This document shows, in pieces, positions 3,001-47,900 of a stretch of DNA of 64,000 bases. Source of the stretch: Eutreptiella sp. 'Long Island Sound 2002'. Lineage: Eukaryota > Protista > Euglenida. The notes under the pieces were generated by a model, which did not search any database, had not been told where the DNA came from, and saw only the letters and a program-made list of their open reading frames with translations. The position numbers and the translations under genes are program-made. The stretch spans positions 188,046,001-188,110,000 of the forward strand of contig OZ038378.1 of assembly GCA_964036045.1 (NCBI GenBank). Reading direction: 5' to 3'. How positions within the stretch are numbered: position 1 is the stretch's first letter; every line of letters begins with the position of its first letter.

Positions 3001-5488
3001 CATTAGGAATCAGCCTCACCAAATGTGCCACTCGGCAACGCCCGCTCCTTCCATACACGGAACGCAGAAGGCACCAGCTGCATCCGGGGCAGAGACAAGA
3101 AAGGGCTCGTCAAGGGCCGCATGCCCTCAGCAAACCCACGGGCAACGCAACCATCTCGATTGCAACCACATCCACGGTCCCAAAACCCGCCCAAACAGCG
3201 TTCAGCCACGGCGTTGTTTGCGCCACTAGGGACCGGCCTTTGGGTACACAACACAAGCCGTTGGCCGCTGTCCCTTCCGTCGATTCCTTTAGATAAGCCC
3301 CCGGCGTCGCCTGCACCCCCCCTCACCCCCGATCCCGTATACCAATGCCAAGGCCCGTGCCTGTGCGCAATCTCTTGCATTGCCGAGGTCTATCCCCAAG
3401 CCCAGGCCCGCCCAACCGCATTCTGGGCCCACGGTCCATTACAACTCCGGGGGAGGGGGAGGGTTAAGCCTGCTTTTCAGACCCCCTTCCCCGCCCCATT
3501 CATTAGGCTCAAAAGGGCTGGGCCTCCCAAAAGCATCGCAGGACCTCTAAATTGCCCAAAAACGCGATTTTGCGCAAAATGTAGGCAAATTTGGTTCAGT
3601 ATTCCTCCCCCCCCGAAAATATCCTCCGAACCAATTTCAACGGGGAAAAAGAGGTCTGGCCGCCCCCACTTCAGATTGGCCTGAAAAGGGCCTCTCCCCC
3701 CTGCATTGCAGTCCACCACTCCGCGCGGGTACGACTGCGAAGGTGTGACTCCGCCGGGTGTTGCATCCCCTGAATACCGCTTGGGCACCAGGCCCCCCGA
3801 CCGATCTTGTGCCTGGACACGCGCTTGTGAAGCAAAACCCCTTCCTCTCCTTGTGCAAACAGCGCGAAACGGACCAAAACCGACAGAGCGCATCGACCAG
3901 CGCCCGTCGCCCAAGCCAGCGGCAGTTTGCAGAAAGCCGGCGGCGGTTGATGGTTCACGGGCGGTTGACGAGAAACCGACCTCACGCGCCCCCGCCCCCC
4001 AGGGGAGCGCCGCATCTCCTGCTCAGGACGGCTGCAACCAACACCCAACACGCCGCACAGCCAACGCCTCTGTCCATCCATTTCCGCTGACACCTCCACG
4101 GGCCTCTTTGGTCAAAAGCCCCGTTGGATGGTCTGTCCCTGTCACAAGTGTGAGGCAACGCCCCGCATTCCTCGGACGACCCCCGACAGAAGAACGGAAC
4201 CGCCATTCCATGAAGTGACGGAAGCCTCTGGGCTGGGGGGACAGGCGCAGGAGTGTCAGTGCAGACTCCCCCCCCCCCGAAAAAAAAAGGTAGACATCCC
4301 CGACGACACGGGGCAAGTACTGACGCGGGCTTGCCCTGGGCCGCTTCAGGAGCGTCCGCAGGGGGCGGCATCCCATCCCTGCCCTCTGTAGTGCGTGGGC
4401 TGAGTGCAGGGCTCATGCGGCAAACGGAGTTGTGCATCCAGTTCACTTCAGCACATTTCAGGCTTCTGGACAGCGAGTGTAAAGGTCTGTGCCTGCCCGC
4501 AGACGAGACCGCCCGCGGCCACGAGCACAAAAAGTGTCCATGGAGCTGGAACGGGTCAGTCCACACCAGAAGACACACTGCGCACAGCGTTTGACTGAGA
4601 CCAACAATATCCAATAAACCGGGGCAAATAGGGGTAGGGTGGGTAATTGCTTCGCTTGGGTTGTGTCATGGGGGAGGGGGGGGCGGTTCAATGTGAGGGG
4701 GGGGTCCCACACCCCCGTCGGGGAGACCAGACGAACGGGTTAGGTGAGTGGTACAGGGCCTCTGGCAGGCGTTTGTCCAGACGGAAATGGGGGCCCTGGT
4801 CCAACATATGGCGTGTCCATACGCGGGCCGTGGGGGATGGGCGGCTGTGCCCCAGGTGGCCTGTTTATGGCAGAGGACGAAGGATTCCCGATCCCTGGCG
4901 TCTGAGCAGGGGAACGGGGCACCTGGAGCTCTGCAACGGAATGCAACCTGTCACTAGGGGGCGGGGCGAAGGGGCTCTCGGAATACTCAAACCGACAAAA
5001 AGAGCGCAGTGATGTGTGGTACGTGTGGTGTGGTGTGTGCGGTGTGCGGCGGGTGTTGGGTGGCGTGTGATGTGTGGCGGCACCGCAGCAGGGCACGTGC
5101 GGCGGGACTGCAATTCGCACACGGTCCGAACGATGACCCTGCGCTCGGAGCGCTTCGTCAGAGCGCCCCAAACATTCCCGTCGCCTTCGGCGCCACCATT
5201 ACTACGGGCGAAGCCCGGCCACCCTTTGCAACTAACTGGGCCCACAGGGCAGGGGTGGTGGTCGCCCGCCCCCCGCCCCCAACGCGTGATATTGGCAGAA
5301 TGTGGCTCCACGTTCTGGCGCCCGGCTCCAAGACTCATTGTCGCGGGACATCAGAGCCGGCCGGCGCCAAGAATAAAGCCGAAGGCCCCAAACACCGCCC
5401 GACAGCCCACGCAGACGCCCTCCCCGGCACCGCCCGCCCCAGCCCTGCCCTCGGCCCCGTTCAAGAAACACGCGTGCGCAGCAGGCCC

Positions 5489-5665
5489 TCAGCCCGGGAT
5501 CCGTGGGAACGGCGTCGGCCCGGGCCTGTACCGCGGCTGCCGGTCCATCATCGCGATGACTTCCTTGGGGCTGGGCATGTACAGCGACCCGCGCCCCCCC
5601 AGATCGGAGCCAAACTTCACGAACACCTTCTTCTGGGACCTGAGCTTGTACTTGGCCGCAAACAC
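5489..5665 (-). CDS. Maturase exon 5: end of domain X and stop codon
   Basis: Acceptor gttgtggcag|GTG; VFAAKYKLRSQKKVFVKFG...PRIPG*; TGA at 5489-5491. Confidence 0.9.
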   Translation of the reverse strand: MFAAKYKLRSQKKVFVKFGSDLGGRGSLYMPSPKEVIAMMDRQPRYRPGPTPFPRIPG

Positions 5666-8600
5666 CTGCCACAACGTACAAATGCAATGCTGCACACTCC
5701 ACCAGGGGGTGCCGTAATGAGAAAAAAAAAACGCCCGGTGGGTAACCGATGGCGGCCGGTGGGTAACCGATGGCGGTTGGTGTGTAACCGATGGCGGTTG
5801 GTGGGTAGCCACCAAACATCAGAGAGTGGATGCCATAGTAAAAAAGTAAAAAAAAAAGGGGGGGGGGGGGTCGAGTGTCCTTATGGCACCCCCTGCACTC
5901 CACGCGCTGCCTGCGCTCAACCCACAGCGTCTCTTTCGAAGCACATCGGAACGCGAACCAGAACATCCAGACACAGCAACACGGTGCTGCATCGGGGGTG
6001 CCTCAGATTCGATCGTGCAGAAGCTCTGCTTACTTCGCGTGCTTTGTTGGAGAAAGTGCTTTGCAACCGTTGATTTCTGTACATATGCGGCCGTCCCTCG
6101 AGGAGTCCCTCGCAAGTGGAGCACTGTTGTGTTGCTTGGGAGGGGAACGGCCACGCCTGACAAAAAACACAAACAATGCGGACACAACAGAAATGCCAAG
6201 GCCCCTGCCAACAACAAATTTTCAACGCAAACGTCAATGACCGACCGCCACCCTCCCCCCCCCAAAAAAACGAACCCGCCGCGCCAGAATAACACGCACG
6301 TTCTGTTCATTCGCAGGCACTCTGAGCAAACTGGACATGATCAGTGGGTTGTCGTCTGAAGCCCCCCCCCCCCCGAAAGGCTGGCACAGACCAGCACGTC
6401 GCCCCCACCACCAGGCCTTTGCTTAGTGATACTAGGGGGGCGGGGGGGTCAAATTGGTCCCCCGGGATTTTGGCTGACCCACCCACCCACCCACATCAGA
6501 AAATTTTTCCTCAGGAAAAAAATGAAATTTATCAAAGGGGCCCGAACTTGGAGGTCGATTTTAGGTACACAAACTTTTTTTTGGCCTCTGACCCCCCCCC
6601 CCCCGGTATAGTATCAACCAGCCACTAAGCAAAGGCCTGCCCACCACCACAGCAAGAAGTTACGTCCCCAACCAGTCGAACGATTACCTTTGCACAGGAG
6701 CTGCGGAGGACCCAGAAGATACTCTTGACGGTGTGGCGGTAGTTGTCTGCGAACGAGTAGTACTCCATGATGCCGAAGTAGACATTGTTGTACTTGACTA
6801 TCATGAGGTCCTTCTCTTGGCTGTAGCCCCGCATGTGTGGCGTCGGCTTCCATTGTCCATCCACGTAGCCCGCCCCTTTCAGCCTCCTCAAGACGTGTTG
6901 AATGGGGCAGGTGAGGCGCAGGAACCGATGCCGCCTGCGGTGCGGATGTAGGGGTGATCCGGCGAAAACTTGCAGCAGTGATGAGGAGGGCAAAGAGGGT
7001 TGTAGAGCAGGAGAGGGGCTGAGCCCCAAGGGTCTGCGCACCAACAAAGGGCTGGAAACCTCTTCGAGTATAAAATTTGATTTTTGCTCCTGAGGAATGT
7101 GGTGTTGGACCCAGCTGGGGGGGGGGAGGTCATGGAGGAGGGGAAGGGGGGGTCCTGCTCCCAATTCCCGTTCCAAAGCGCACATGGGGACGGCTGTATT
7201 GGAGGTGGGGTTTGCAGGGATGACGAAGAATGGTAGCGGCGATGGAACAAGGGCCTGCAGGGCTGATAGGCTGAACATCGTGGGTTGATGGAGAGTTGGG
7301 GGAGCTTGGGGGAGCACGGCCTTTTCTTTTCTGATAGTACAGCGACAACGGCAGCGGCTCCTTACCCATCAGGCGTGACTCGTGCTGACTGACTGAAATG
7401 TCCGGTGTCAAGACCTGCTGGACTGCTGAGTCCGCAGAATCTGTCCAGCACGAGCGAGCGGGAGATACCGCCGTGTCTATGTGTATCCCGGGAAGGGAGA
7501 AGCATCCTCTGGCAAAATACCGCCCGGTTCCTTCTTTCCTTATTCTCACATGCGCAGTAGGGCAGGGGCAAGATGGGGCTATGGCTGGGGGGCTGAGGAG
7601 CAGGGATGGGGGCACGTTTGCACTCCTGCTCGCCCCACCGATGGTTGTTGTTGGGGTTGTGTGTGCCAGTGGGGCAGGGGGCTACCCTCTGAGCGGACGT
7701 CGTGCTACCACCCTACTGCGCCCCTAATGAGCTGGCTTCCATGAGGGGCAACCTGGCCCAGGGAGCACACCTTGACTGACCCCTGAGGGGTCACAGGTGG
7801 TGGCTCACAGCCCTGAGCCCCATACCCCCAAGCACTCGGTACTTGGAGTAGACAGTGTCTGCCAACCACAGACCACCTTTGTACTACCCCCCAACCCCAT
7901 ACCTCCATATCCCCCCCCCAATACCCCACCACGCCCGTGCCTCCGAGATAAGGGAAGCGGGGCGATTTCATGCCATATACAGGTGTGCGGGGATGCATGG
8001 AGTCCAGCAGTGATGCATTCGAAGAGGGGGAGGTAAGCCCCGCCCCCCTCCTCCAGGGCGCCCAGCCTATGCCCAGCCACTGTCCCCCTGACGCCAAGTG
8101 CCGGCCTCAATGGCATTTGTAACCGACAGTAACCGCCCCCAACCGCTTTGGCAACCTCCTCGAGCCGCCTGTCTAACCGCCTCTAGGGCCGCCTCTGAGG
8201 TCCCTAGATCCATGCATCCCTGATGATCATGCATAGAATCAAGTTTCAGGGTGCGAGTCTGCATAGCGCATAATTTCCGGCGCGAAACTGTGGGGGCCGG
8301 CCGTCATCGAACTGAAAAATCATGGTTTGTGTGAACATTGCTGTCTCTTGGTGGGGAAACGTATCCCCAAGGCGGTACAAAACGCCCGTATTGGATCAGG
8401 GCCCATTGCATGGGGGGCAATCAGGCTCAAACCCTGACCCCAACCCCCCCATCGAAAATGTAGGCCCTGTGGGGGTGGGGTGGGGAGGGGGGTGGCTGGT
8501 TTTGGTCCAGAGGGGGGGGCACCGGGTCCACGACAAAAAAATGTACCCTTAGGGGGTCCGGTGCTCGGCAGCCATGGGGTGCTGGACGGGGTGGTGGTCA

Positions 8601-11600
8601 GGGGTCAAGAAAATTTTCATGTTTCTCACACATATTTGGATTCCCCATAAAGGCCTGAGCATTTTGGGGAGACATACATGGGGCCAGACCGGAATTTTAC
8701 CCACCCACCATATGCTAAATTAAACTTCTAGTGCCTTTGGTGCCAAGTTGGGGCCAAATGTGATCCCGAACTCCTCAACATTTTGGCCACTCCGAGGGGG
8801 TGGGGGGGGGGGGGTCTGAGCCAGGCTGTTCCCAATGGCCCGTTGGCGCATTGCTGACTTGTGCGCCACATGAGCAAACGTGCGGTGTCCAAGTGCCAGA
8901 GAACCGGGATGAAACAGCACAAGACGTATCCTGAGGGCAAGGGGACAAACCAAGGAAGGCCAACACACGGCACCCTCTGCCAAAACTACAGCCAACACCT
9001 CCGGTCCGAACACCTGCGCCTTCCCAATCCTCCGCCACCAAAGACCCCCAAAAAGCGGACCCCAGCCCTGAGGGGACGGGGGGTTGGGGGGGAAATGGCC
9101 CAAAAGCGGGTCCCATCGACCTCTTCCCCCACTCGCCCTGGAGGGAGGGGGTGGGTGCCGATGCGACTGCACCGTACAAAGGGGGGGGGGGGGTCTTCAG
9201 GCGCTGGACAGCTGTTCATCAACGGCTGTCAGCGCTGCTTGCAGGGCAACGCATGTCAATGGGAAATGGTGTGGCACGCCGACCACCGATGCAGAAGCCC
9301 CGGTGCACATCCAAATACCCACGACCTCCGGGGCACTTTGGCTTGATCCCCGGCGCCCGTTGTGTTGCTGTGCTCTGCCTTGGGGTCGGTCCTGGAACGT
9401 TGGGGCCGGGCGCCTTTGCCGCTCAAATTGACGGCGTTTCTCAACAGATTTCGCATGACCGGTCGGTGACCTTTGAAGGTTGAAAAATACTGGCAGGCCG
9501 TTGGCCAAAGGCGGTTCAAGCTCAACCGCAAGAAGTGGCCGGTAACTGCAAGCGGTTGGCCGGAAGCCACCGGCCGGTGACCGATAGGCGCTGGCGAGCG
9601 CGCGGCTTGTTTTATTTTTGGTACAAGAGAGCAAGCCCTGCTCTTGAAAAACGTCGCGTGCGACACACACGACACGCATCGAGAGACACATTGTGCAAAG
9701 TGTAGGCCTCAGGGCACCTCTCCCCAAGCTGCTCGATAACCGTGTAGATCAGGGTCCCGAGGAAGAGCGTGCCCTTGTCGCTCCGGATCAGCTGGACGTT
9801 CGGGTCGACTTTGAAGGTCTGAATTTTGATGAAATCGTAGCACATCATCTCGATCTCCCGGGCATCACGACCAATACCAGCGAATCCGATGAAGAAGCTG
9901 CCGGCGTGCCGGCAGTAGTACAGCCGCCGGTACCCCTCGAAGGTGGGGTCCTTGTGCGGCATGTGCACGGCCTCTTTGCGGAGTTGCCGCGCCAATCGGA
10001 AGTCGACGTCCTCGCCCGACACTTTATACTTCTCCAAAGCCGATCGGGCCTTGTCGAGTGCCTCCTGCTTGAAACCGTTGAGCTTCTGCCTTTCGCCGTA
10101 ATTGTACTTGGGAATGAGCTGCGGAAATGATGGGGCATGGGTGCAGTAGTAATGGGGCATCGGTGCGGGCAGACATAAAAAAGTCATATTTTGGGAGAGA
10201 ACCCACCCACCGGGGGAGTATCCGCACCGCACGCGCACCGCGCGCGCACCGCGTCAGGTATTTGAACAACTTCTCCAGGAGATGGTCTACGGGGAGAGAA
10301 GTTGTAGATGGTACCTGCTGGGCTCTGAGGCGTTACCATTCCCCCTGATTGGCTCTGGATGAAAGGGTCTACGGAACAACCCCAGTACCCGCACCGCGCA
10401 TGCACCGCGCGCGCACCGCGTCTGATACTCCCCCACCCACTCACCCATCTACCCCGCCCCCTCCGGGGTAGAGTTGACGGGCCAATAAGCTGCTGCCTGT
10501 TTGCCAGAAAGGCCAAGTAAGTAGGCCGGTTGGTACTTCCGGATGTGCTCCATTCTTCAAATATGAAGGAGGAGCTTGTGCTCATTGTTCGTCCACAGCC
10601 GGCGTTTGGGTGGGGGCGAGTGGAACAGTCATCCCCCTGCTCACAAGTGCTGCCTCTGCCCCCGTGGCGTCCCCTCCACCGCCGGCGCCGGCAGCCTTCG
10701 CATTCGGTCGTTCCCAAGACCGTGAAGTTCGGAGGGTGCCCACCACCACAAATGATGTGGGGGGGTGTAACACAGGCCCAGGGGGCTCCGGATCACCGAG
10801 TGTTACCCATCGGTGGACACGGGGGGCCTCAGAAGTCAGGGGTACAATCATCTTGGCAGTCCCTCCTGCCTGGCGCACCCGCATGTTCACGGAGGGCCGC
10901 CATTGGGCCCAATAATGCCGCAACAACGGCACAATGCTCCGGCGCGAAACCGGAGGACAGCATGGCTTCAGAACGTACTCTCCGAAACACTCTGATGGCA
11001 TTTGTCATGAGACCCTCAGCGCCTCCTGTCCGCCGGCTTGCGGTCTCCAGTGCTGCCGGGCCGTCCCACTCACCCACTGCTTACTCTGTTCTCATGTGCA
11101 TGCAGTCAAGGGTCATTCTTTCCATCGCACTCGGAATGCTGTAAAACCAGTTGGCGGGAAAACGGTTGGGGAGCAGGCGGGATGCGGACCCGCCGCTCTG
11201 CTCCAGCCGCGCCGGCCTTCCCACGGCCTTCATTGCCAACTCCGGTATTTGCGCGTCCGACGAGCCGTCCCATGCTGCAGTGTTCCGTAGGTTCTGCTCC
11301 CTTTCCTCACTGGCCGGGGTAGAGGATTGCCTTGACCAAAGCATCATTGAGTGCAGAGGCAATGGGGCGTGGGTGCACTAGTGATGGGGCATGGGCGCAG
11401 GGGCAAGGGGCATGGGTGAAGTGCGGGTGGCGTGCGGGCGGGAGCTCCGGGCCACCCTCCGCCCGGGCGTCCCATCTTCCGTTGCTCGCGTGGCCCAGTG
11501 TTGCTCTGGTTCGTATGGAATGGACATCACACCCGAGCCACCCACGGTGACCCATCAGCTGGTTCCCCCCCCCGGGCTCCACGGACAGTCCCTCCAGAAC

Positions 11601-14600
11601 GCGCGACGCCCCCGCCCCCAGCCCCGGGAGGGACCACCAAATGACGTCCCCGCAAACCAAACCCGACCTCTCCACTACAACTCCATTGTGCTCCGTGGTA
11701 ACCAGAATTTTCTTCGGCGCCCAGGGCGCCCGATCTGATCTCCGGTGCAGCATGACAGGCAATGCAGGGCACCGCCCATCGATGGAGCGTGGCCGCAGGG
11801 GCAGTGGAGCCGCGGTCCAGGGGCGATGCAGAAGTGGCGCGGGCGATGGGGCGCGCGTGCGGCGACCACGGGGCGTCGGGGCGTGCGGGCGACGCGATGC
11901 GGGTGCGCGGCGGGGACGGAGCACGGGGGTCAGGGGGGGGGACGCGGACCTCACTCTCGACCCACTTGTCAAACTTGTCCAACAGAATGTTCATCAGAAT
12001 GGGGCCCACGACCGACCCCTCCGGAGTCCCCGGCAGCGACGTCTCCGGCACCTTCCACATATTGAAGTACCCGGCGTCGATCGCCTGGCTGATCAGCGCC
12101 AGGAACGCCTCGTCGTCAATGCGCTCGCGGAGCACCGACAGCAGGATGTCCCCGTCCATCTCGTCGAACACGTCGCCAAAGTCCCCCCGAATGTAATGGT
12201 CGCACTCCTTGTACCGCATGTCGACGTACATCAGCGTGTCGTGCACCCCCAGCCCCGGCCGGAACCCGAAGCTGTGCTGCGAGAACGTGGGCTCGTAGAT
12301 GGCCTCCAGGACGCACACCAGCGCGTGCTGGACGACCTAAAAGGAATGGGAATGCGGCGGGGCCGGAGGCCGACACGCATGCGCCCGGCGGGCCCTCTGG
12401 GTCCCGGTGGGCCAGGCTCTGCGAGGTGGACTTGCCGAAGGCAATAGAATTCCCCTCTGCATTCCGAGCCTTTTGAATATACACCATGTCATGTCATGTC
12501 ATGTATTGCCAGCTACCACCGTCCGTCAGCCCGCTATTCAGCGTCCGACGGCAAGACGTCTGGCCGAAACACACACACTCAGAGCCCCAGAGAGGGCACC
12601 AGCCGGTAGAGAAGCTACCTGACCCAGACGGGGCTTAAGCTGGGGAACTTGGTATGGCAGTCGTACCTCTGCCTCATCCGGATAGCACCGTCCCCGGGAG
12701 GAGCGACAAGTATTGGCTGATCCCGGTGGTGGGGGCCCGCTCCGGCCCATCCGACTCGATTTTGAATATACACCAGCCGGGGGGCAAAATCCCCTTCCTT
12801 GCCTTGGCAACTTGCAGCTTTGGGTAGGCGAGGAGGCATTTCTAGTGCCCGTCACTGTTGCATGGCACAATGCCGGGCAAGCGTTGGCCAAACTGCCATT
12901 CCCCAATGGCGCAGGTTTTGGGGGGGTCTGGCCTCAAAAGGTCAGGTGTGGACCCGCCACTGTGCTCCAGCCGCGCCTGCCTTCACACGGCCTTCATCGC
13001 CAACGCAGCACATTGCGTGTTCGACTCGCCAGCAAACGTTCCATTGGCCCAGGGTTCTCCTCCTGGTCCTCCTGGGCTCAGGGTAGAGGCAAGGACTTCT
13101 TGGTTCAGGGCTTTATCGCCGGGTCACGCTTGCTTGGGTGCTGAGTGGGTCATGGCGTCTGTGTTGTGTTGGCCCATGTCTGACTTTAGGGCGTGCTTGC
13201 GTGTGCGGGCCCCACTTGGCCACATACCCCCCGCCCCCCTTGCAAACTCCCGGGTTAGCGCGCGACGGTCTCCCGGGTGGGGGGGGGGAGACGGTCGCCA
13301 AGTGACGGTCTCCCGGGGGGGGAGGGGGTTGCAAGGGTATTTCAAGGCAAACTGTGGTACCCTCCACTAATGCAAGCAAAGAGAACACGTGTGAAGCGAC
13401 TTTCGCGTTGATGCCAATGTGCTTTATCCAACACAAATGTTATTGAGGATCCAAAGGAACGGTAAAGAACTTCTGGGTACGAGAATAACACACTTTGAAC
13501 TGTTGCACATGCTCAGTTTGCATGACAGGCACGTGGTGTGTTGCAAAGCAGGTGTGAAGCAGATGGGCAACACAAACCAGCACAATACAGGTTAACTAGA
13601 AAAACATGGAAGTGACGGTCTCCCGGGTGGGGGGGGGGGATTGCAAAGGGGGGGGGGTACCTTGCGCTTGGGGGGTCTGGAGGGGGGTAGGGGTAGGGTC
13701 CGGGCGTCGGGTTCTGTATGTACCCCCCGCCCCCCCTGCGGGGGCAACGACATCATGTCCCAGAGCGCCGACCGCACGGTTCCGAAACACTCTCGGACCG
13801 GGCGTTGGAAGAAGTGAGGCATGGCGCTGCCCAGGGGCTGACTGCCCGGGAATCCCGACACCCCAGGGGCAGGACCTTGTCCACGGGCCTAATCAGCCCC
13901 GGGATCACGAACTTCTCGCCCCTCATCTTCGCCTCCTTCTCAGCGGCCGCCCGCAGGCGGTCCCGGCGCCGCGCCTGCGTGAGGTTCAGGCGCTTCTTCT
14001 TCCGCGGCAGCGAGAAGTCGCCGAACTGGTACGTCCCCTCGCGCAGCTGCCGCCCCACTTTCTCGACCACGTTGTCCTTCCCCGGCACCACCAGCGGGTC
14101 GCTCTTGTTCTTCAGCCGCTCGCGCTCGACGTCGGTCTTGGGGGTGCGGAGCATCCGCGTGTGCGCGATCGCCAGCGTGTACGAGTCGTACACGATGGGG
14201 AGGATGTTGCGGACCTTGCAGCCGGGGTTCTGCCGGCACTGCCACGTCAGCGCCTTCAGCTTCGCGCCTCTCTCGGAGCCCTCGGAGCGCCGACGTCGCC
14301 CGCCCCCGGGCCTCCGATCGGCACCTCTCGCGCCCGCGGGCCCCACATCGGGAGACGTGCCAGGCCTCGTCCCGAAGGACGTCATCAGCGCCAGAGGTCC
14401 GTCACGAGGCCGCGCCCGGCGGCCCAGCAGGACGCCCCCGACCAATGCCCCCACGAGAACCGCGGCCCAGCGCAGCATGCCCAAGCCGATGCCGGGGGAG
14501 GGGGTGGGGGCACGTGGCAGGCCTGCGGGCACGTCCCGCACTGGCACGGCTGGGCCTTGGAACGGGTGTCCTCCCTGAGCCGCACGCGCCAACCGCCGTG

Positions 14601-14895
14601 CCCGGACCTCGGTCCCCGGCACCGCGGCGCCGGGAGGTACCGGGGTACGGGCCGACGATTCCAGGGGTGAGCCCCGGGATGCCCCGCCGGTGCCGACGCC
14701 GACGGGTCTCAACGAGTGGGACACGCCGTGCCTTGGGCCTGTGACGGGGACGGCGTTGGCGCGCACCACCGAAGCAGCAGCTGCTGTGCCGAGGAAGACG
14801 GCCAGGGCCACAAAGGCCACGGCGGATGCAAAGCGCAACACGCGGACGGAGGGAACCCCGGCGCCGGGAGTCCACATGTCCCGTAGACGCGCCAT
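5489..14895 (-). CDS. Nucleus-encoded, putatively plastid-targeted group II intron maturase (RT-inactive RT0-7 plus domain X), 5 exons, 743 aa: join complement(13876-14895, 11950-12336, 9718-10118, 6688-6934, 5489-5665)
   Basis: Exons join in frame through four GT-AG introns (1020+387+401+247+177 = 2232 nt = 743 aa + TGA). Motifs: RT0/1 KLKALTWQCRQNPGCKVRNILPIVYD...LREGTYQFG; RT2/2a DK|VVQHALVCVLEAIYEPTFSQHSFGFRPG; RT3 YIRGDFGDVFD; RT4 GTPEGSVVGPILMNILLDKFD; RT5 RLYYCRHAGSFFIGFAG; RT7 GTLFLGTLI; domain X YNNVYFGIMEYYSFADN...SSCAK|VFAAKYKLRSQKKVFVKFG. N-terminus has two hydrophobic segments. Confidence 0.92.
5735..5810. repeat. Dispersed 21-bp minisatellite family GGTAACCGA(C/T)GGCGGTTGG; also about 9470-9600, 24810-24860, 37660-37750, 59520-59580, 60965-61080
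   Basis: Same unit recurs in short tandem runs across the window. Confidence 0.8.
6688..6934 (-). CDS. Maturase exon 4: domain X (thumb)
   Basis: Acceptor ccgcaccgcag|G; RHRFLRLTCPIQ...YYSFADN...SSCAK; donor AAG|GTAATC. Confidence 0.92.
9718..10118 (-). CDS. Maturase exon 3: RT4-5 insertion and RT5-RT7
   Basis: Acceptor tcatttccgcag|CTC; LIPKYNYGERQK...YYCRHAGSFFIG...VIEQLGE; donor AG|GTGCCC, phase 2. Confidence 0.92.
10212..10434. mobile_element. About 220-bp MITE-like element in maturase intron 2
   Basis: 11-bp inverted ends GGGGGAGTATC / GATACTCCCCC; two internal direct copies of CGCACCGC(G)n; CACCCAC on both flanks. Confidence 0.45.
10618..10760 (+). repeat. Dispersed SINE/MITE-like family GTGGGACAGTTGTCCCTCT...GAAGTTTGGAGGGTGC; other copies 19338-19490, 29276-29322 (partial), 49960-50345 (interrupted)
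   Basis: Direct sequence similarity among the four copies. Confidence 0.7.
11120..11400. repeat. Diverged intronic repeat; related copies at about 12920-13150 and 49250-49340
   Basis: Shared core GGACCCGCC.CT.TGCTCCAGCCGCGCC.GCCTTC.CACGGCCTTCAT.GCCAAC. Confidence 0.65.
11555..11740 (+). repeat. Dispersed repeat; second copy at 15895-16085
   Basis: Shared CCTCCAGAA.GCGCGACG...CACCAAATGACG...CAAACC.GACCT.TCCAC.ACAACTCCATTGT. Confidence 0.7.
11950..12336 (-). CDS. Maturase exon 2: RT2a-RT4
   Basis: Acceptor cattccttttag|GTC; VVQHALVCVLEAIYEP...DKWVESE; donor GAG|GTCCGC. Confidence 0.93.
13876..14895 (-). CDS. Maturase exon 1: targeting presequence plus RT0-RT2
   Basis: ATG at 14895; ends ...IPGLIRPVDK at donor AAG|GTCCTG; phase 0. 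Confidence 0.9.
14371..14895 (-). other. Euglenid class-I plastid-targeting presequence (signal peptide, transit peptide, stop-transfer TM), about aa 1-175
   Basis: TM1 FASAVAFVALAVFLGTAAAA (aa 22-41); S/T/P/A/R/G-rich, acid-poor spacer (aa 42-135); TM2 WAAVLVGALVGGVLLG (aa 143-158); then basic RRARPR and GPLALMTSFG. Confidence 0.78.
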
Positions 14896-14904
14896 GTGGG
14901 TGAC

Positions 14905-14925
14905 CTGGAGCAGGGAGATGACGGA
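14905..14925 (-). promoter_or_regulatory. Candidate spliced-leader trans-splice acceptor of the maturase gene
   Basis: Pyrimidine-rich gtcatctccctgctccAG ends 9 nt upstream of the ATG, with no upstream coding exon needed. Confidence 0.5.
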
Positions 14926-16384
14926 CCCGAGGTCTGTTCTACCCCATCGAAGAGGCAGAAAACCTGAGCTGCAGTCCTGATTTCCCCTGGTCCGGGGCTA
15001 CGAGCATGGCAGCAGCAGACCATACATAACCGCTACACGGCCCATACACAACACACGCATGGGGATCACACGCACGGGGATTACATGCCCATTCCATACC
15101 CATCCCCCACAATACACACCGCCCCTGCCCCACAATACACACAGCCCATACCCGATGACAGACAACCCACTCTCGCCCCGCCCCCCCCCCCCCTTCCTGT
15201 GTGACAGGGCGATGCGTACCAGTGGCCTCTAAGCAGTGCCCATTGCTCCCCCGCCGTGTTGGACACAGTTGGGTCCACTTCGCCCTCGTCCATGCAATCC
15301 GCCATCCACCCCGTGCGGTCATTTCTTGGTCAGTGCCGCGCAATAGCTCTGTCAGGTGGCAGCCGTGGGGGCTGGAACCCCCGGGTGGGCCCAGGCCTCG
15401 GCCCACTATCGCCACATCCCCGGGACAGCCAAACATCACTGCACCGTGTGCCAATGGGGTTTGCAGATGGGGGCACGAGGTTTTCGACGGCCGTTGGCTG
15501 ACGTTTGGTCAGACGCGTACCAAACGCTGTGGCACAAAGCAACGGTTTGTTGACAAAAGCAGGTCAAGGAAGGAAATCATTGTAAGGAGCCCAGCCCAGG
15601 CTGTCCTTAAGAGTAAAACCAAAAACTGCCGGCCTCCGGTACACCCACGCCTCTGCAGAGCGCCAGTCGGCGAGTCACTGCGGTTGGTCATTGGCCAACC
15701 GGCGTCGATTAAGCGCTAACCTCCGTCGGTTGAGTCAACTGCCGTCAGTTCGCCGAATCCTGCCACCAATAACCTCCGGCCACCCTGAGCGGGGGAAATC
15801 ACATCCCTAAAGGACAGCCCTGGCGTAGCCCATGGGCGTGATGGTGCTTGCCCAGTCCAAGGATTCCCTGCTGGATCACCATTGGATAAGGGTTACCCCC
15901 GCCCCCGTGGAAATCCTCCAGAATGCGCGACGGTCCCCTATACCCCCCAGGGAACCGTCACCAAATGACGCCCCCCCCCCCCCCCCGGCCAGGGGGGGGA
16001 ATGCGCGAGGACCCAAACCGGACCTTTCCACCACAACTCCATTGTACCCAGAGGAATTGTCTTCAGCACCTGTGGCGCCGTGGACTTTTGGGGCAGGTGC
16101 CAACGGCTGTGCCAGAGGGCAGGGGGGATTCTCCACAGGGAGGGGGTGGGAGGTACAAATCAGCGCAAATCCCCGTTTAACCAACCCTCCAACCGTACGG
16201 GGCAAAATTTTCCACTGTATGGGCCACTGTACGGGGTGGACCGATTTTAGAAAAAACTGCACTATGCCCCTTGGGCTTAGGGCTTCCAACTCTCCAGCGC
16301 GTGTCCCAGAGCTTCCTGGGCATATCCCCTGGGTCGCCACTGACCTGCCAGTTCCTGGTACGACTTTCTGTCACCCCTGCGCCT

Positions 16385-16690
16385 TTCCATCACCCCTACA
16401 ACCCTCCATCACCCCTAGAAGCCCCTTGAACCCTTACAACTTTCCATCACAATAATAACCCGTTGTAATTGCGATGGGGAGCTATGACGGGGTTGTAGGG
16501 GTGATGGGGAGTTGTCAGTGTGATGGGAGGTTTGTAAGTGTGGTGGGGAGTTTTAAGGCTGATGGGAAGTTTTCAGGGTTATGGGGGGTTGTAAGGGAGA
16601 TGGAGAGTTTTAAAGGTGATGAGGCATGGGGTTTCAGGGGTGATGGGGTATTGTTGGGGCGATGGGGAGTTGCAGGGGTGCAACAGGTGG
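16385..16690. repeat. Foldback / GATGGGG-rich minisatellite; related block at 17345-17500
   Basis: Perfect 17-bp inverted pair CCATCACCCCTACAACC (16387-16403) / GGTTGTAGGGGTGATGG (16491-16507), followed by repeated GATGGG(A/G)AGTT units. Confidence 0.65.
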
Positions 16691-18431
16691 AAAGTGAGTG
16701 CGCTCTCAAACATGCTGTGGGCTATACAATTAACATGTTCATCATTCGGCCATCAGGCTGCACCCTCTAACCCCCCCCCCCTCCCGCCCCCATTCACCAA
16801 AATCATTCCGTCAACCAGAAGACCATGTTACTGCGCCAAAAGGTAACTTCAAAGAGGTTGGTAGCACTGAGATGTTCTGGAGACACAGCAGCAGCTGTAT
16901 CAGGCTAAACGCCTAGTTGCGGTAAAAACACGGTTTTACCTTTAAAAGAGTTTTCCCGCTTCCCTTAATAAGCCCTGTACCAGCGCAGTCACACACACCC
17001 TGCAGGGGGAGGCAGTGTATGAGGCATTCAATGTGTTCAACGTGCTGGCCACTTCCAGATATGTATGTTGGGGTAGATTGAGCTCGGTATGGCTGAGTTG
17101 ATACAACACATGTTGATTTTCATAGTGATAGTGGTCTTTTGTGGTCGCTACCCAAGAATGAGCAGAGACCAGGATCCCAGACCACACCCGACCTCACTCA
17201 CCAAGCCCCCTCTCTCCGCCACCCATCGCGAAGAGCACCACTAGACCAGGGGTGGGAACTTCACTAAGCAATGGTCTGCGCCGCACCGCAACAGGGAACG
17301 GAGATGACATCATCGCCGGCCTGCAGTCCCCACCAGACAACCAGGGGTGATGGGTGGTTGGGATGATGGAAAATGGTAGGGGTGATGGGGGCTTGTGGGG
17401 GTGCCCAGATCACCCGTACAACCGGCCATTACCCCTACAACCCCGCATCACAACTCACCATCAGCCTCACAATTCCCCATCAGCCTTAGCCTTTGAACCT
17501 GCCCCTGCAACCTCAGAACGCACTCTCGCGGCGTCAAGCAGGGCATTCCTTTCCCCTGTGGGACCTTCTCCCAGTACCTGTACGGCATTTCAGGAGAAGC
17601 GGGCCGCTTTTCGTGTCCATCACGATACCACCACGCGATCGGGCAGGAGGGTCTGGGCACTCCATGACAACGAACTCAAGGCCTGTCGTTCATTCGCATT
17701 CAGTTTGTCCTCGAGCAGATGGGATGCGAGTCTGACCGCCAGTGTTGATGCTGACTGAAGCGCCTTCCAAAGCTGTCCCCCCCCCCCCCCTCCTCCCAAC
17801 ACACACGGTGCCAGCAATGCGCTCCAAGGGTCACTGTGGGTTCTCCCTGTGGGCCGACGCCCAGCAATTGCTTTGTGTTTGTTGGTATCGGGTTTGCTGC
17901 TGCCATCCTTCCGGGGTGTCCCACCCCTGCTCACTACCAGACTACCACACTGATCCCTCTCTCATCCCCCCAGACAGAGACGTGTAGGGTACGGGTTTTA
18001 CTGAAAAACGCACATCACTTGCACAACAAAATCCGCAGTGAATCAGACATACCACAGGCGTTTCGGCTCGAAAAAACAAAGACACTTAGAGCCACCCTCC
18101 CATATGCGAACTGTTTCCCCACACCCCCAAGCCCCCAAAACAAAAGTGGCTGACATACTTTCCCCCCCCCCGCGCGGACGCCTGCCCGCACGGTTGTACC
18201 CACAGCAGCTGTCATCGGCCCTCCGACCCTCACGGTCATGGGAATGGCCATGATGCCTCCTTTTCGAACCACAGAATCAGTGCGGGCGACCTTAGGATTG
18301 CCCACTTGCTCGGTATCAGTCAGCAAAACTGTCCACCTCACGACACGCCTTGCCTGCACGGCACCCATTGCAGCATTCGACGATATCCCACACTCCACCG
18401 TGGGAGCCCCACTGGTCTTCCGATCGCACTA

Positions 18432-44982: not shown

Positions 44983-47900
44983 ATCTGAACCGCAAAACCT
45001 CCCCCAGGAAGCCATTGAATACAGAACACCCGTCCTGGATAGCGCGAATTACGCCGTTTTACTCAACAAAATGACAATTTGTTGTTGTTTGTGTACACTG
45101 CCTGAGCCAACTTGCCTGGGTGGTGTGTTTGGAGGAAGCAGTGCAATATTTTCAGTTTCTTGAAAATTGCAGCGAATTTCAAAAATGGACAACCGCAGGG
45201 TGGGAAAAGCGTGCAGTGATTGTATTTCAATGGGATCAAAGTAGGTAGGTCCCTACCCCAGGTTAGTACAGGCACTCCCTGCCAGGCACCATGAAGATAG
45301 GACAAGGGCACCTCTATCTAGGATTTCGTGACCTTTTCTTGAGGAAACAAGCCTTTAAAGAGGGAGGTGATAGGAGGTGGGGACTGCGGAGTGTTACACT
45401 GCAGGAGTGCGACATGATGAGAAGAAGTGTGGAGCCCTCTGTCCTTGTTTATTGGGAATGCGCAGACCTGTACGTCCAGAGCCTCCGTTGGGCATTCGGC
45501 AGACAGCGACTTCGCGACTTGCACGGCGTCCGCGTAGCGCCCCGCGTCTCTGAAAGCACCCACGGCCTCGGGTGCCCGGTGCACAGCGAGGTACAGCACC
45601 GCAGCGGCATGTAGATCCCCAGCCTCACGGAACTTTTGGGCGTACGCATAACACATCTCCCGCCAGAACTGCGGCGACACTGCGGGGCTGATGGCCAGCC
45701 ACAATAGCGAGGGCACGGGCGTGACAGACCCTGTCAAAGTAAAACAAAAGAAGATGTCTGGAGAATAGAGAAGAAGGGCTCGCTTTTCCTCTGCCCAATG
45801 ATTTACGGGGCACTGAACAGTCACCGTGGGATCTGGCTCGAACCGATCCTGCACGTGTGTGTGTTGGGGGAGGGGTGGGGCTAATGAAGGGGAGCTCAGA
45901 GAAGGTGTTCGTGGACCCTTTGGTAGACTCACCCCCTTTAACACCGCCACCTCCCAAGAGCTACTGGATTGCACCCACTCAAAGGCACATAACTTCAAAG
46001 AGGAGTGGGAAGGAGGCACAATGCAAATGGTGTAAGGAACGAAACCCGCTGTCAGAGCGAGAACCGACTGCATTTATGCTTTTCGGAGCGTTGTCTGCAT
46101 ACAGCACGGCATCAGGAAAATGTTGTTTGTGGGGGGGGGGGGGCTGCCATTTTATCGAGGAAGGCCTGCATGAGTCTCCAGGCTGGCTGGCTGTGTGTGT
46201 TGGGGGGGGGGGGGGGTCACGAGTGAAAGTGACAATGGCGGCGAAGCTGCCATTGAAGATGTTCTCCAAACAACAGCAATTGTAGTAGACCTACAGACCT
46301 TCCACCAAAAGTATATTCGGCAATATTACACTCTCCGGCCCCCACCCCATCCCACTACCGGGTGCGGTGTGGGAGGGGATTGGGGATGGGGAGTATTTTG
46401 AGGGTGGGGAATCAAAGAAATAGTTTTGAAAGTACTTCGGAGGGTTGCAGGTGGGTATCAGGCCCCACCAAGGCCTCGGGTATGACACTTCTAGTACTCT
46501 GGTTAGGATCCTAACAACAATCCTAACCAGCGTACTAGAAATGGCCACTGTTGCCCCGAAGATAGAAAATAGTGCATACTACCCCTATATACCCCCATAA
46601 GTGAGATATGGGGAATATTTGCCTCACCCGTCATCTTTTCTATGGTGTATCAACCCATGTTAGGCATAGGGGACACTATTTTGGGGGGTCTTCACCCCTA
46701 TTTTTGGTGCTGGGGCCAGGATCCTGCCAGTGTCGATGTCATACCCTATTTTTAGCCCTTCCTGCCCCTTCATGGCCTTCAATACCCAGCCGCATGCACT
46801 CAAAATACCTTCCAAAACATGTTTTTTTGAGTTTCCCACCCTTAAAATAGGGGGGGGGGGTCGTCCCTACTTGCCCCCAAAAGCCCACCCAATCCCAGGG
46901 GGTGGGGGGCGGAGAGTGTGATATTGCCGTGGACTTAATCTTTTGACCTCCAGGTGCCCATCTGACACCCCTCATCTTCATGGAAATGATTGAACTCCAG
47001 ATCAGCGAAGATCGGGGAAATAGTGGACAGCAGGTGCGCAGGTGGCCTCTCCCCAAAGGTGCGTGGGAACACCCCTGCAATCCCACATTGGGCAGGGGAG
47101 GATTCATGCACTACAGGGAGAGGCCGAACTTCATTTTTCGGTTTTTTTTTCTTCACGGTGACAAATTTTGGCGCAAAACTTCTGAGGTGATTCTATTGCG
47201 CTTCGCACTGTGCAAGTCATCAGCTGCAGAAAGTGGTGTCATCCAAAATAATTGTGTGATCAAGATTGGGGCTTGGGCAAGATTGGGGAAGATTGAATGT
47301 CCTAACAAGGAGGAAAGACACAAAGAGGGACTACAACACACTGTAGACGGAATACTTGATCGTTGTAAGTGGACACAATACCAAAAAATCGGTCTTGGAA
47401 TCTCGATTTGTGAGGTGTTGAAGAGGGAAAAATAAGAAAAGACTGTCACGCACTTGGTGCACCAGTCCTTTGCGCTTGCTTGCCCCCTCCAGCCCCCCCA
47501 ACACCCAATGCTCATACAGGGTGAAAAACAGCGTAAAGAGGGCCAAAAAAAATGCAATACATGATGACCAGATTTGACCGTGGCAAGTGGTCACAACACA
47601 AGCAAACATCAGCAACAGAAACACGAAAGAAAGTATGTTCAACTAATGTCATCATCATGTGGCCATGCGCATTTTTTGAATGGCATGGCCACACAGTGGG
47701 GATGTGGTGCAAACCCTCCCTCAGCGCCGCCCTCTTTGTCCTCTCCCCCTGCATGCATGCAGGCAGGTCAGGGCAGGGCTCCATGCTGGTGCCGGCTAAT
47801 GCGGCGCAGGGGGCATCGCATGCTTCCGGTGGGGAGCACGGGCAGGCAGGTGCGGAGGAGGCGTGGTGTGCGCCAGATCTTCGTCGTACGTAATGGGTGG

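Follow-up and report, generated by a model that had tools for sequence, protein, structure and literature searches.

Eutreptiella sp. 'Long Island Sound 2002' (Euglenida) is represented here by a stretch of 64,000 nucleotides (assembly GCA_964036045.1, contig OZ038378.1, positions 188,046,001 to 188,110,000 of the forward strand), hereafter the window, in which all positions are counted from its first letter. The gene under study lies on the minus strand of the window and encodes a homologue of the maturases that are carried by group II introns. Its model was rebuilt independently by six-frame translation of positions 5300-15100, after which the edges of the coding blocks were checked for GT/AG dinucleotides and phase. 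Five minus-strand coding blocks were recovered, each junction pairing a GT donor with an AG acceptor of matching phase, and the joined exons form a coding sequence of 2232 nt, or 743 codons. The first-pass annotation, made from the letters of this DNA, had described five exons joined through GT-AG introns into an open reading frame (ORF) of 743 amino acids (aa), and the independent rebuild arrives at the identical count. The gene as observed is real and far beyond chance.

All five exons are read from the minus strand and all four introns have GT..AG borders. Exon 1 (14895-13876, aa 1-340) holds the start codon, the presequence and eroded RT0 and RT1 blocks of the reverse transcriptase (RT) domain, and ends at the donor GAC AAG|GT; an in-frame stop is located 5' of its ATG at about 14998-15000. 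Intron 1 (12337..13875, 1539 nt) is made up mainly of high-copy repeats and leads to exon 2 (12336-11950, aa 341-469), which encodes RT2-RT4. Intron 2 (10119..11949, 1831 nt) likewise contains repeats, and exon 3 (10118-9718, aa 470-602 plus 2 nt) comprises a long insertion between RT4 and RT5 followed by RT5-RT7. Intron 3 (6935..9717, 2783 nt) is in phase 2, with the split codon AG|G giving Arg; exon 4 (6934-6688, aa 603-685) carries the core of domain X, the thumb. Beyond intron 4 (5666..6687, 1022 nt), exon 5 (5665-5489, aa 686-743 and the stop) supplies the end of domain X and a short Pro-rich tail. The donor of intron 2 was set at VESE|LIPKY, in agreement with the FVESELIP of the relatives in an alignment with four of them, and every junction restores the aligned sequence of the intron-less relatives, as at FVESE|LIP and SCAK|..AAKYK. 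Intron 4 also contains a 21-nt tandem repeat (5735-5807, 3.5 copies, 92% matches), whose minus-strand reading is a repeated PPSVTHQ.

The domain content of the protein is that of a group II intron-encoded protein (IEP). In profile searches the exon-2 ORF passed the Pfam cut-off for RVT_1 (2.9e-8), and the exon-4 ORF matched Intron_maturas2 (7.7e-13), with a faint continuation in exon 5; the best PDB match by sequence was LtrA (1.3e-18, exon 2). The first-pass annotation had credited the ORF with RT0-7 and domain X, a claim that stands for its larger part: domain X is conserved and RT2-7 can be aligned with the relatives. It is generous for the rest, as RT5 is without YADD and RT0 and RT1 are strongly eroded, only weakly recognizable and free of any Pfam match. 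In the alignment with four relatives, the RT0-RT1 region (13876..14250, minus strand, aa 216-340) has lost the RT0 loop motif, carries a basic insertion of about 27 aa in RT1 and is about 21% identical to the clade of plastid intron ORFs described below.

Conservation is uneven along the remainder of the protein. Exon 2 (RT2-4) is 48-51% identical to the plastid intron ORFs, keeps the Asp of RT3 and shows two changes in RT4, Q to E and S to G, and exon 3 is about 30% identical to the clade. At the RT5 active-site position (9897..9908, minus strand) HAGS stands in place of YADD, with both catalytic aspartates gone, whereas 33 of the 34 nearest relatives have Y/FADD (31 YADD and 2 FADD, the last one being YADE). 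The domain X motifs YYSFADNY and LRSSCAK in exon 4 are conserved with the relatives, and the FAAKYKLRS motif of exon 5 is kept. No endonuclease (En) domain follows; in the relatives this domain amounts to an extra 70-90 aa or so that is missing from the window protein. The domain X motifs and RT2-4 remain conserved, with 37-51% identity to active IEPs. Rfam detected no group II intron RNA around the ORF, neither in the whole window with the gathering score as threshold nor, at E<=1, within 3500-17000, which bears out the earlier remark that none is recognizable there. Instead of lying in domain IV of such an RNA, the ORF is interrupted by GT..AG introns. By these characters the window protein is a domesticated group II intron maturase homologue. 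Since both RT5 aspartates, the endonuclease domain and the intron RNA have been lost, the protein is predicted to be unable to reverse-transcribe or to move; it would be neither a mobile element nor a polymerase, yet it appears to have kept the RNA-gripping scaffold and thumb, a pattern as in MatK and the plant nuclear maturases (nMATs).

The setting of the gene was assessed from sequencing reads over 9600-15100, which covers exons 1-3. The two runs that contain all sampled sequence words are genomic DNA, and depth along their contigs stays level at about 10-39 where these pass from exon to intron; this flat, unique depth indicates a single-copy gene. Within introns 1 and 2, word depth climbs in places to 10^3-10^5, compared with the roughly 10-39 of the exons, and such places are therefore repeats. 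Very high-copy stretches within the two introns (10152-10520, 12360-12730 and 12912-13650) occur as many variant copies with joints to other places. Further along the window, an ORF at 45318-46073 on the minus strand matches the Gemin5 TPR domain (Pfam PF23774, 7.6e-14) and is probably an exon of a nuclear gene for small nuclear ribonucleoprotein assembly, in support of a nuclear context. The spliceosomal-type introns, the third-position GC content (GC3) of the exons of 86% compared with a GC content of 55-64% in the introns, the single-copy depth and the Gemin5-like neighbor establish that the maturase gene is nuclear and free-standing, as had been proposed. Its GC-rich nuclear context and spliceosomal introns also set it apart from the plastid-encoded types (ycf13/mat1, mat2, mat5, mat4).

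RNA-derived reads touch the gene sparsely. Two estuary metatranscriptomes gave four identical contigs of low depth (about 2-6) in exons 1, 2 and 3, and one contig stops precisely at the acceptor of exon 2. The reads neither confirm nor refute the junctions, for which the evidence is the sequence itself and the colinear alignment of a homologous protein derived from mRNA. The estuary metatranscriptome runs X1, X9 and X10 contain fragments that are identical to exons 1-3, and run X5 (organism B) contains half of the exon-2 words; the source alga, as the same or a very close strain, is present in the X1/X9/X10 estuary samples. At the 5' end, an AG at 14905..14906 (minus strand) follows a pyrimidine-rich tract 9 nt 5' of the ATG and, judged from these letters, is a plausible spliced-leader (SL) trans-splice acceptor. 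A search of the window for the SL RNA sequence (SL ending ...TTTTTTTTCG) gave no match, a result that is uninformative. A tiny upstream frame, ATG-GGG-TAG, sits at 14936-14944 on the minus strand, 5' of the AG, and trans-splicing at the AG would remove it.

The homologous mRNA-derived protein is P0016, an ORF of a Euglena mutabilis Trinity transcript from EukProt and the sole other euglenid relative found. Between aa 275 and 741 it is colinear with the spliced model across all four junctions (E 6e-80), and the alignment runs ungapped across junctions 1, 2 and 4, with a 2-residue gap near junction 3; we regard this colinearity as strong, indirect support for the predicted junctions. The E. mutabilis protein has CGPQ at RT5, that is, no YADD, and it too is without En. 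Both euglenid proteins finish 51-56 residues past AAKYKLRS, and both are without the HNH endonuclease domain that most relatives have kept. The two RT4 changes, Q to E and S to G, are common to them, and between their C-terminal tails identity is 47%, compared with 29% to the clade. An AlphaFold (AF2) model of P0016 (pLDDT 83.9) has as its best fold match LtrA bound to intron RNA (8h2h_D, E 7.7e-21). No further euglenid protein was obtained with a profile of P0002 and the exon pieces or with P0016 as the query.

With exon 2 as the query, an exhaustive HMMER search of 1.84 billion representatives returned first P0001, the genomic ORF of the gene itself, and next a group that is 47-51% identical. 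The proteins of this group begin with psbA exon sequence or carry Pfam Photo_RC, and members lie between psbA fragments, beside other intron ORFs and homing endonucleases; the single named member of this plastid psbA-intron group is from the red alga Glaucosphaera vacuolata. In trees computed without the named euglenid mat4, ycf13 and mat2 proteins and the plant nMATs, the window protein and P0016 pair with a support of 99/96, and the euglenid pair joins 32 plastid psbA-intron ORFs with a support of 100/100. Cox1-type mitochondrial ORFs, among them a cluster that contains a yeast mitochondrial RT, form the next outgroup, and the euglenid pair branches within the mitochondrial-like lineage. In a check for long-branch effects, either euglenid sequence alone was still sister to the plastid clade, with a support of 99. 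The source clade is AT-rich. The trees point to descent from an IEP of the mitochondrial-like lineage, of the type found in the psbA introns of algal plastids, and the clade of psbA intron ORFs may be the group discussed as 'mat4' in Sheveleva & Hallick 2004 and Maciszewski et al. 2021. Since the sister group is formed by plastid psbA-intron ORFs, the gene could plausibly have arisen independently of the plant nMATs; orthology with the nMATs is unlikely, the closest sequences found being ORFs of plastid introns.

No close bacterial donor emerged from a pattern scan of prokaryote genomes with the clade member P0003, in which identities were 30-38% only. A metagenome scan with exon 2 yielded no euglenid sequence, its best match being 48% identical and all matches being organelle-type or bacterial. 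Four GC-rich matches (P0080, P0117, P0130 and P0145) were considered as paralogues and rejected, being bacterial intron fragments. Among the contigs that carry relatives, L001 (contig k141_77235, 139,680 nt), L002 and L003 are plastid-type contigs in which psbA is split by multiple introns into several Photo_RC fragments; the introns contain RT/maturase ORFs of differing types (one with RVT_N/GIIM) as well as GIY-YIG and HNH endonuclease ORFs, and these are unusually intron-dense psbA genes. One protein labeled as belonging to a Candidatus Aenigmatarchaeota metagenome-assembled genome (P0008, NCBI MFB6215869.1) clusters inside the plastid psbA-intron clade at 56-58% identity and probably comes from a mis-binned organellar contig.

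Ahead of the RT domain, the protein has an N-terminal extension of about 210-215 aa without counterpart in the relatives. The first-pass annotation had noted a presequence with two transmembrane segments fused to the ORF, and hydropathy analysis (Kyte-Doolittle, 19-aa windows) recovered both. The first hydrophobic segment (14758..14832, minus strand, aa 22-46; up to 2.36) is preceded by a basic n-region and resembles the h-region of a signal peptide, followed by VRA|NA. It is succeeded by a transit-peptide-like spacer (14491..14757, minus strand, aa 47-135) in which Pro, Ala, Gly and Arg are abundant and acidic residues almost absent (P 18%, A 14%, G 15%, R 12%, S+T 13%, D+E 3%). The second hydrophobic segment (14422..14490, minus strand, aa 136-158; up to 1.9) is stop-transfer-like, with RRARPRD after it. 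In euglenids, plastid presequences of class I consist of a signal peptide, a transit-peptide-like region and a stop-transfer anchor; in 375 plastid preproteins of Euglena gracilis the hydrophobic domains were located at residues 9-60 and 97-130, with a transit-like region enriched in Ala, Pro and hydroxylated residues (10.1101/573709). The segment at aa 22-46 lies inside the reported signal-peptide range and the spacer matches the reported transit-like traits, and the predicted N-terminus fits a euglenid class I plastid presequence, although its second hydrophobic segment lies slightly later than the reported range.

A nuclear maturase has been listed before in E. gracilis. The supplement of the plastid proteome contains a protein 10014 named 'maturase K', not plastid-coded, with the origin 'Rhodophyta', and its log10 CP/MT of '3+' denotes detection in the plastid fraction only (10.1101/573709). 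Maciszewski et al. devote one sentence of section 3.6 to EG_transcript_10014 as a functional nuclear maturase, and they consider a trans-acting nuclear factor likely in view of the mostly deficient plastid-encoded maturases (10.1101/2021.09.24.461685). The first-pass annotation had known of no characterized euglenid example; this is outdated in that the transcript has been named, although it is still uncharacterized, and no other mention of EG_transcript_10014 was found in the literature searched. Transcript 10014 was also not found in the mitochondrial proteome supplements or in the supplements of Ebenezer 2019. The window gene quite probably encodes EG_transcript_10014, given that there is a single copy of it and that the one close relative with a name comes from a red alga, in keeping with the label 'Rhodophyta'. 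The detection in the plastid fraction only is taken from that literature and probably concerns the same gene. The earlier claim of supply to the plastid is consistent with the presequence of class I type and with the plastid-only listing, if 10014 is, as is probable, the window gene.

We consider it reasonably probable that the gene encodes a maturase which is imported into the plastid and promotes the splicing of degenerate introns in trans. On this reading the protein descends from the RT/maturase of a mitochondrial-like group II intron, of the kind now present in algal plastid psbA genes, and in the course of its domestication has lost the intron RNA, the endonuclease domain and both catalytic aspartates of RT5. 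The RT-fold scaffold and domain X, on which a maturase relies for binding intron RNA and folding it, have been retained, and a predicted tripartite presequence of signal peptide, transit-peptide-like spacer and stop-transfer segment has been gained at the N-terminus. Import may then proceed by co-translational entry into the endoplasmic reticulum (ER) and by Golgi vesicles to the three-membrane plastid and its stroma, where the protein could act in trans, binding degenerate introns of group II, and possibly also of group III, and aiding their folding for splicing. A bolder proposal is that it is a 'proto-spliceosome' protein independent of Prp8 and the plant nMATs, in which the move of a psbA-intron maturase to the nucleus let the organellar introns shed catalytic and protein parts; this we put forward tentatively, as a possibility on the unlikely side.

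Several observations weigh against a plastid splicing factor, and there are three rival accounts. Over 9600-15100 (exons 1-3) a spliced read or contig was sought and none was recovered, and one of the metatranscriptome contigs crosses an exon/intron border and continues 90 nt into intron 3; together with the repeat-filled introns, this could be taken to mean that the locus is a nonfunctional relic, either an insertion of organellar DNA or a dead retroelement, whose five-exon ORF arose by chance and by the choice of splice sites. Such a reading is very unlikely, for the 2232-nt frame stays open over four phase-consistent GT..AG junctions that each restore the sequence of the relatives, its GC3 contrasts with the AT-rich source clade, a presequence of plastid type is fused to it in frame, and the mRNA-derived homologue from E. 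mutabilis has the same derived changes. A second rival concerns the destination of the protein. The second hydrophobic segment (aa 136-158) is slightly past the typical 97-130, farther from the N-terminus than usual, and about 55 more residues, a long Gly/Arg-rich linker, follow it before RT0. For transcript 10014 the published table gives 'no signal' and no SL, as would be expected of a contig truncated at its 5' end, and the proteome localization would apply to the window gene only through its probable identity with that transcript. The product might be a membrane protein of the ER, the Golgi or the envelope, or might be mitochondrial like most plant nMATs. We judge this improbable. A signal peptide, a Pro/Ala/Arg-rich and acid-poor spacer and an anchor followed by basic residues constitute the class I plastid pattern, and the only nuclear maturase reported in E. 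gracilis belongs to the plastid fraction alone and is absent from the mitochondrial supplements. Moreover, the mitochondrial genome of E. gracilis was reportedly found by Dobakova and co-workers in 2015 to be without introns, so that a mitochondrial maturase would have no substrate.

A real gene with a plastid-located product could still have a role other than splicing, such as another plastid RNA task (stabilization, processing or translation), or could be a slowly decaying remnant. The erosion of RT0 and RT1, blocks that in LtrA help to bind intron RNA, and their insertion speak for this; so does the identity of just 34% between the window protein and P0016, on very long branches, which suggests fast or relaxed evolution. 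Expression also seems low: in the library of 1.84 billion representatives a transcript-derived E. gracilis protein covering exon 2 is absent, the sole entry being the genomic ORF P0001 (99%). Set against these points are the conserved motifs of domain X and RT2-4 at their level of identity to active IEPs, an intact ORF with strong codon bias over five exons, and a homologue with the same derived traits that is transcribed in a second species. According to the literature, all IEP-derived nuclear and organellar proteins that have been studied (MatK, MatR, nMAT1-4) act in splicing. A role outside splicing is on this balance unlikely, if somewhat less so than a destination outside the stroma, and the plastid splicing factor is the reading that we carry forward.

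The plastids of Euglena contain the most extreme degenerate group II introns known, together with group III introns that are without domain V. How the latter are spliced has been a question since the early 1990s, and reviews assume a general trans-acting machinery. A nuclear factor was proposed earlier and never studied; the window locus turns that proposal into a concrete gene with a model, a presequence, a dead RT, a kept thumb, an ancestry and a homologue. As a candidate factor, it may offer a direct handle on what splices the Euglena group III introns. Should the splicing role be true, it would be a second, independent case in which an intron-encoded protein was turned into a splicing factor encoded by the host, in this instance one that serves a secondary plastid. 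Nuclear IEP-derived maturases are already known as a kind from land plants, and the euglenid case had been noticed in passing. As far as the searches show, what is new here comprises the gene structure, the presequence of class I type, the absence, in common with E. mutabilis, of the catalytic aspartates and the endonuclease domain, and the placement beside the plastid psbA-intron ORFs.

Among known systems, EG_transcript_10014 is described as a nucleus-encoded maturase, was detected in the plastid fraction only and was assigned the origin 'Rhodophyta', in agreement with the red alga Glaucosphaera as the source of the only named close relative here; its publications, in contrast, give no gene structure, presequence, dead active site or phylogenetic position. 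The algal plastid psbA intron ORFs are nearest by sequence and tree, with 48-51% identity in RT2-4 and with the long RT4-RT5 insertion and the domain X motifs in common. They differ in being true IEPs: they lie in frame with or beside psbA exons, are rich in AT, have kept YADD and in most cases bear an HNH endonuclease domain. LtrA of the Lactococcus lactis intron Ll.LtrB (PDB 5g2x, 8h2h) is the best sequence match and the best fold match for the E. mutabilis homologue, and shows an RT scaffold and thumb gripping the intron RNA. It is, however, an active RT with DNA-binding (D) and endonuclease domains that acts on its own intron in cis, whereas the euglenid protein is without the catalytic Asp pair, the D/En domains and a cognate intron. 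MatK and the Euglena plastid ycf13 (mat1) resemble the window protein in the loss of RT activity, the retention of domain X and the thought that they serve several introns, but they are encoded within organellar introns, whereas the window gene is nuclear, has alignable RT2-7 and belongs to a different clade.

The closest parallel in kind is offered by nMAT1-4 of land plants (Mohr & Lambowitz 2003; PMC4424553). They too are nuclear, derive from mitochondrial-like-lineage IEPs, are free of intron RNA, bear an organelle-targeting extension and have partly degenerate RT/En functions, and of them as of the window protein one expects an action in trans on more than one intron of the organelle. The window gene differs in belonging to Euglenozoa and in having plastid psbA-intron ORFs, not plant mitochondrial ORFs, as its sister group. 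Where nMAT1-4 carry a mitochondrial presequence, the window protein carries a predicted signal peptide and stop-transfer segment suited to a three-membrane secondary plastid, and its expected substrates are that plastid's introns of groups II and III.

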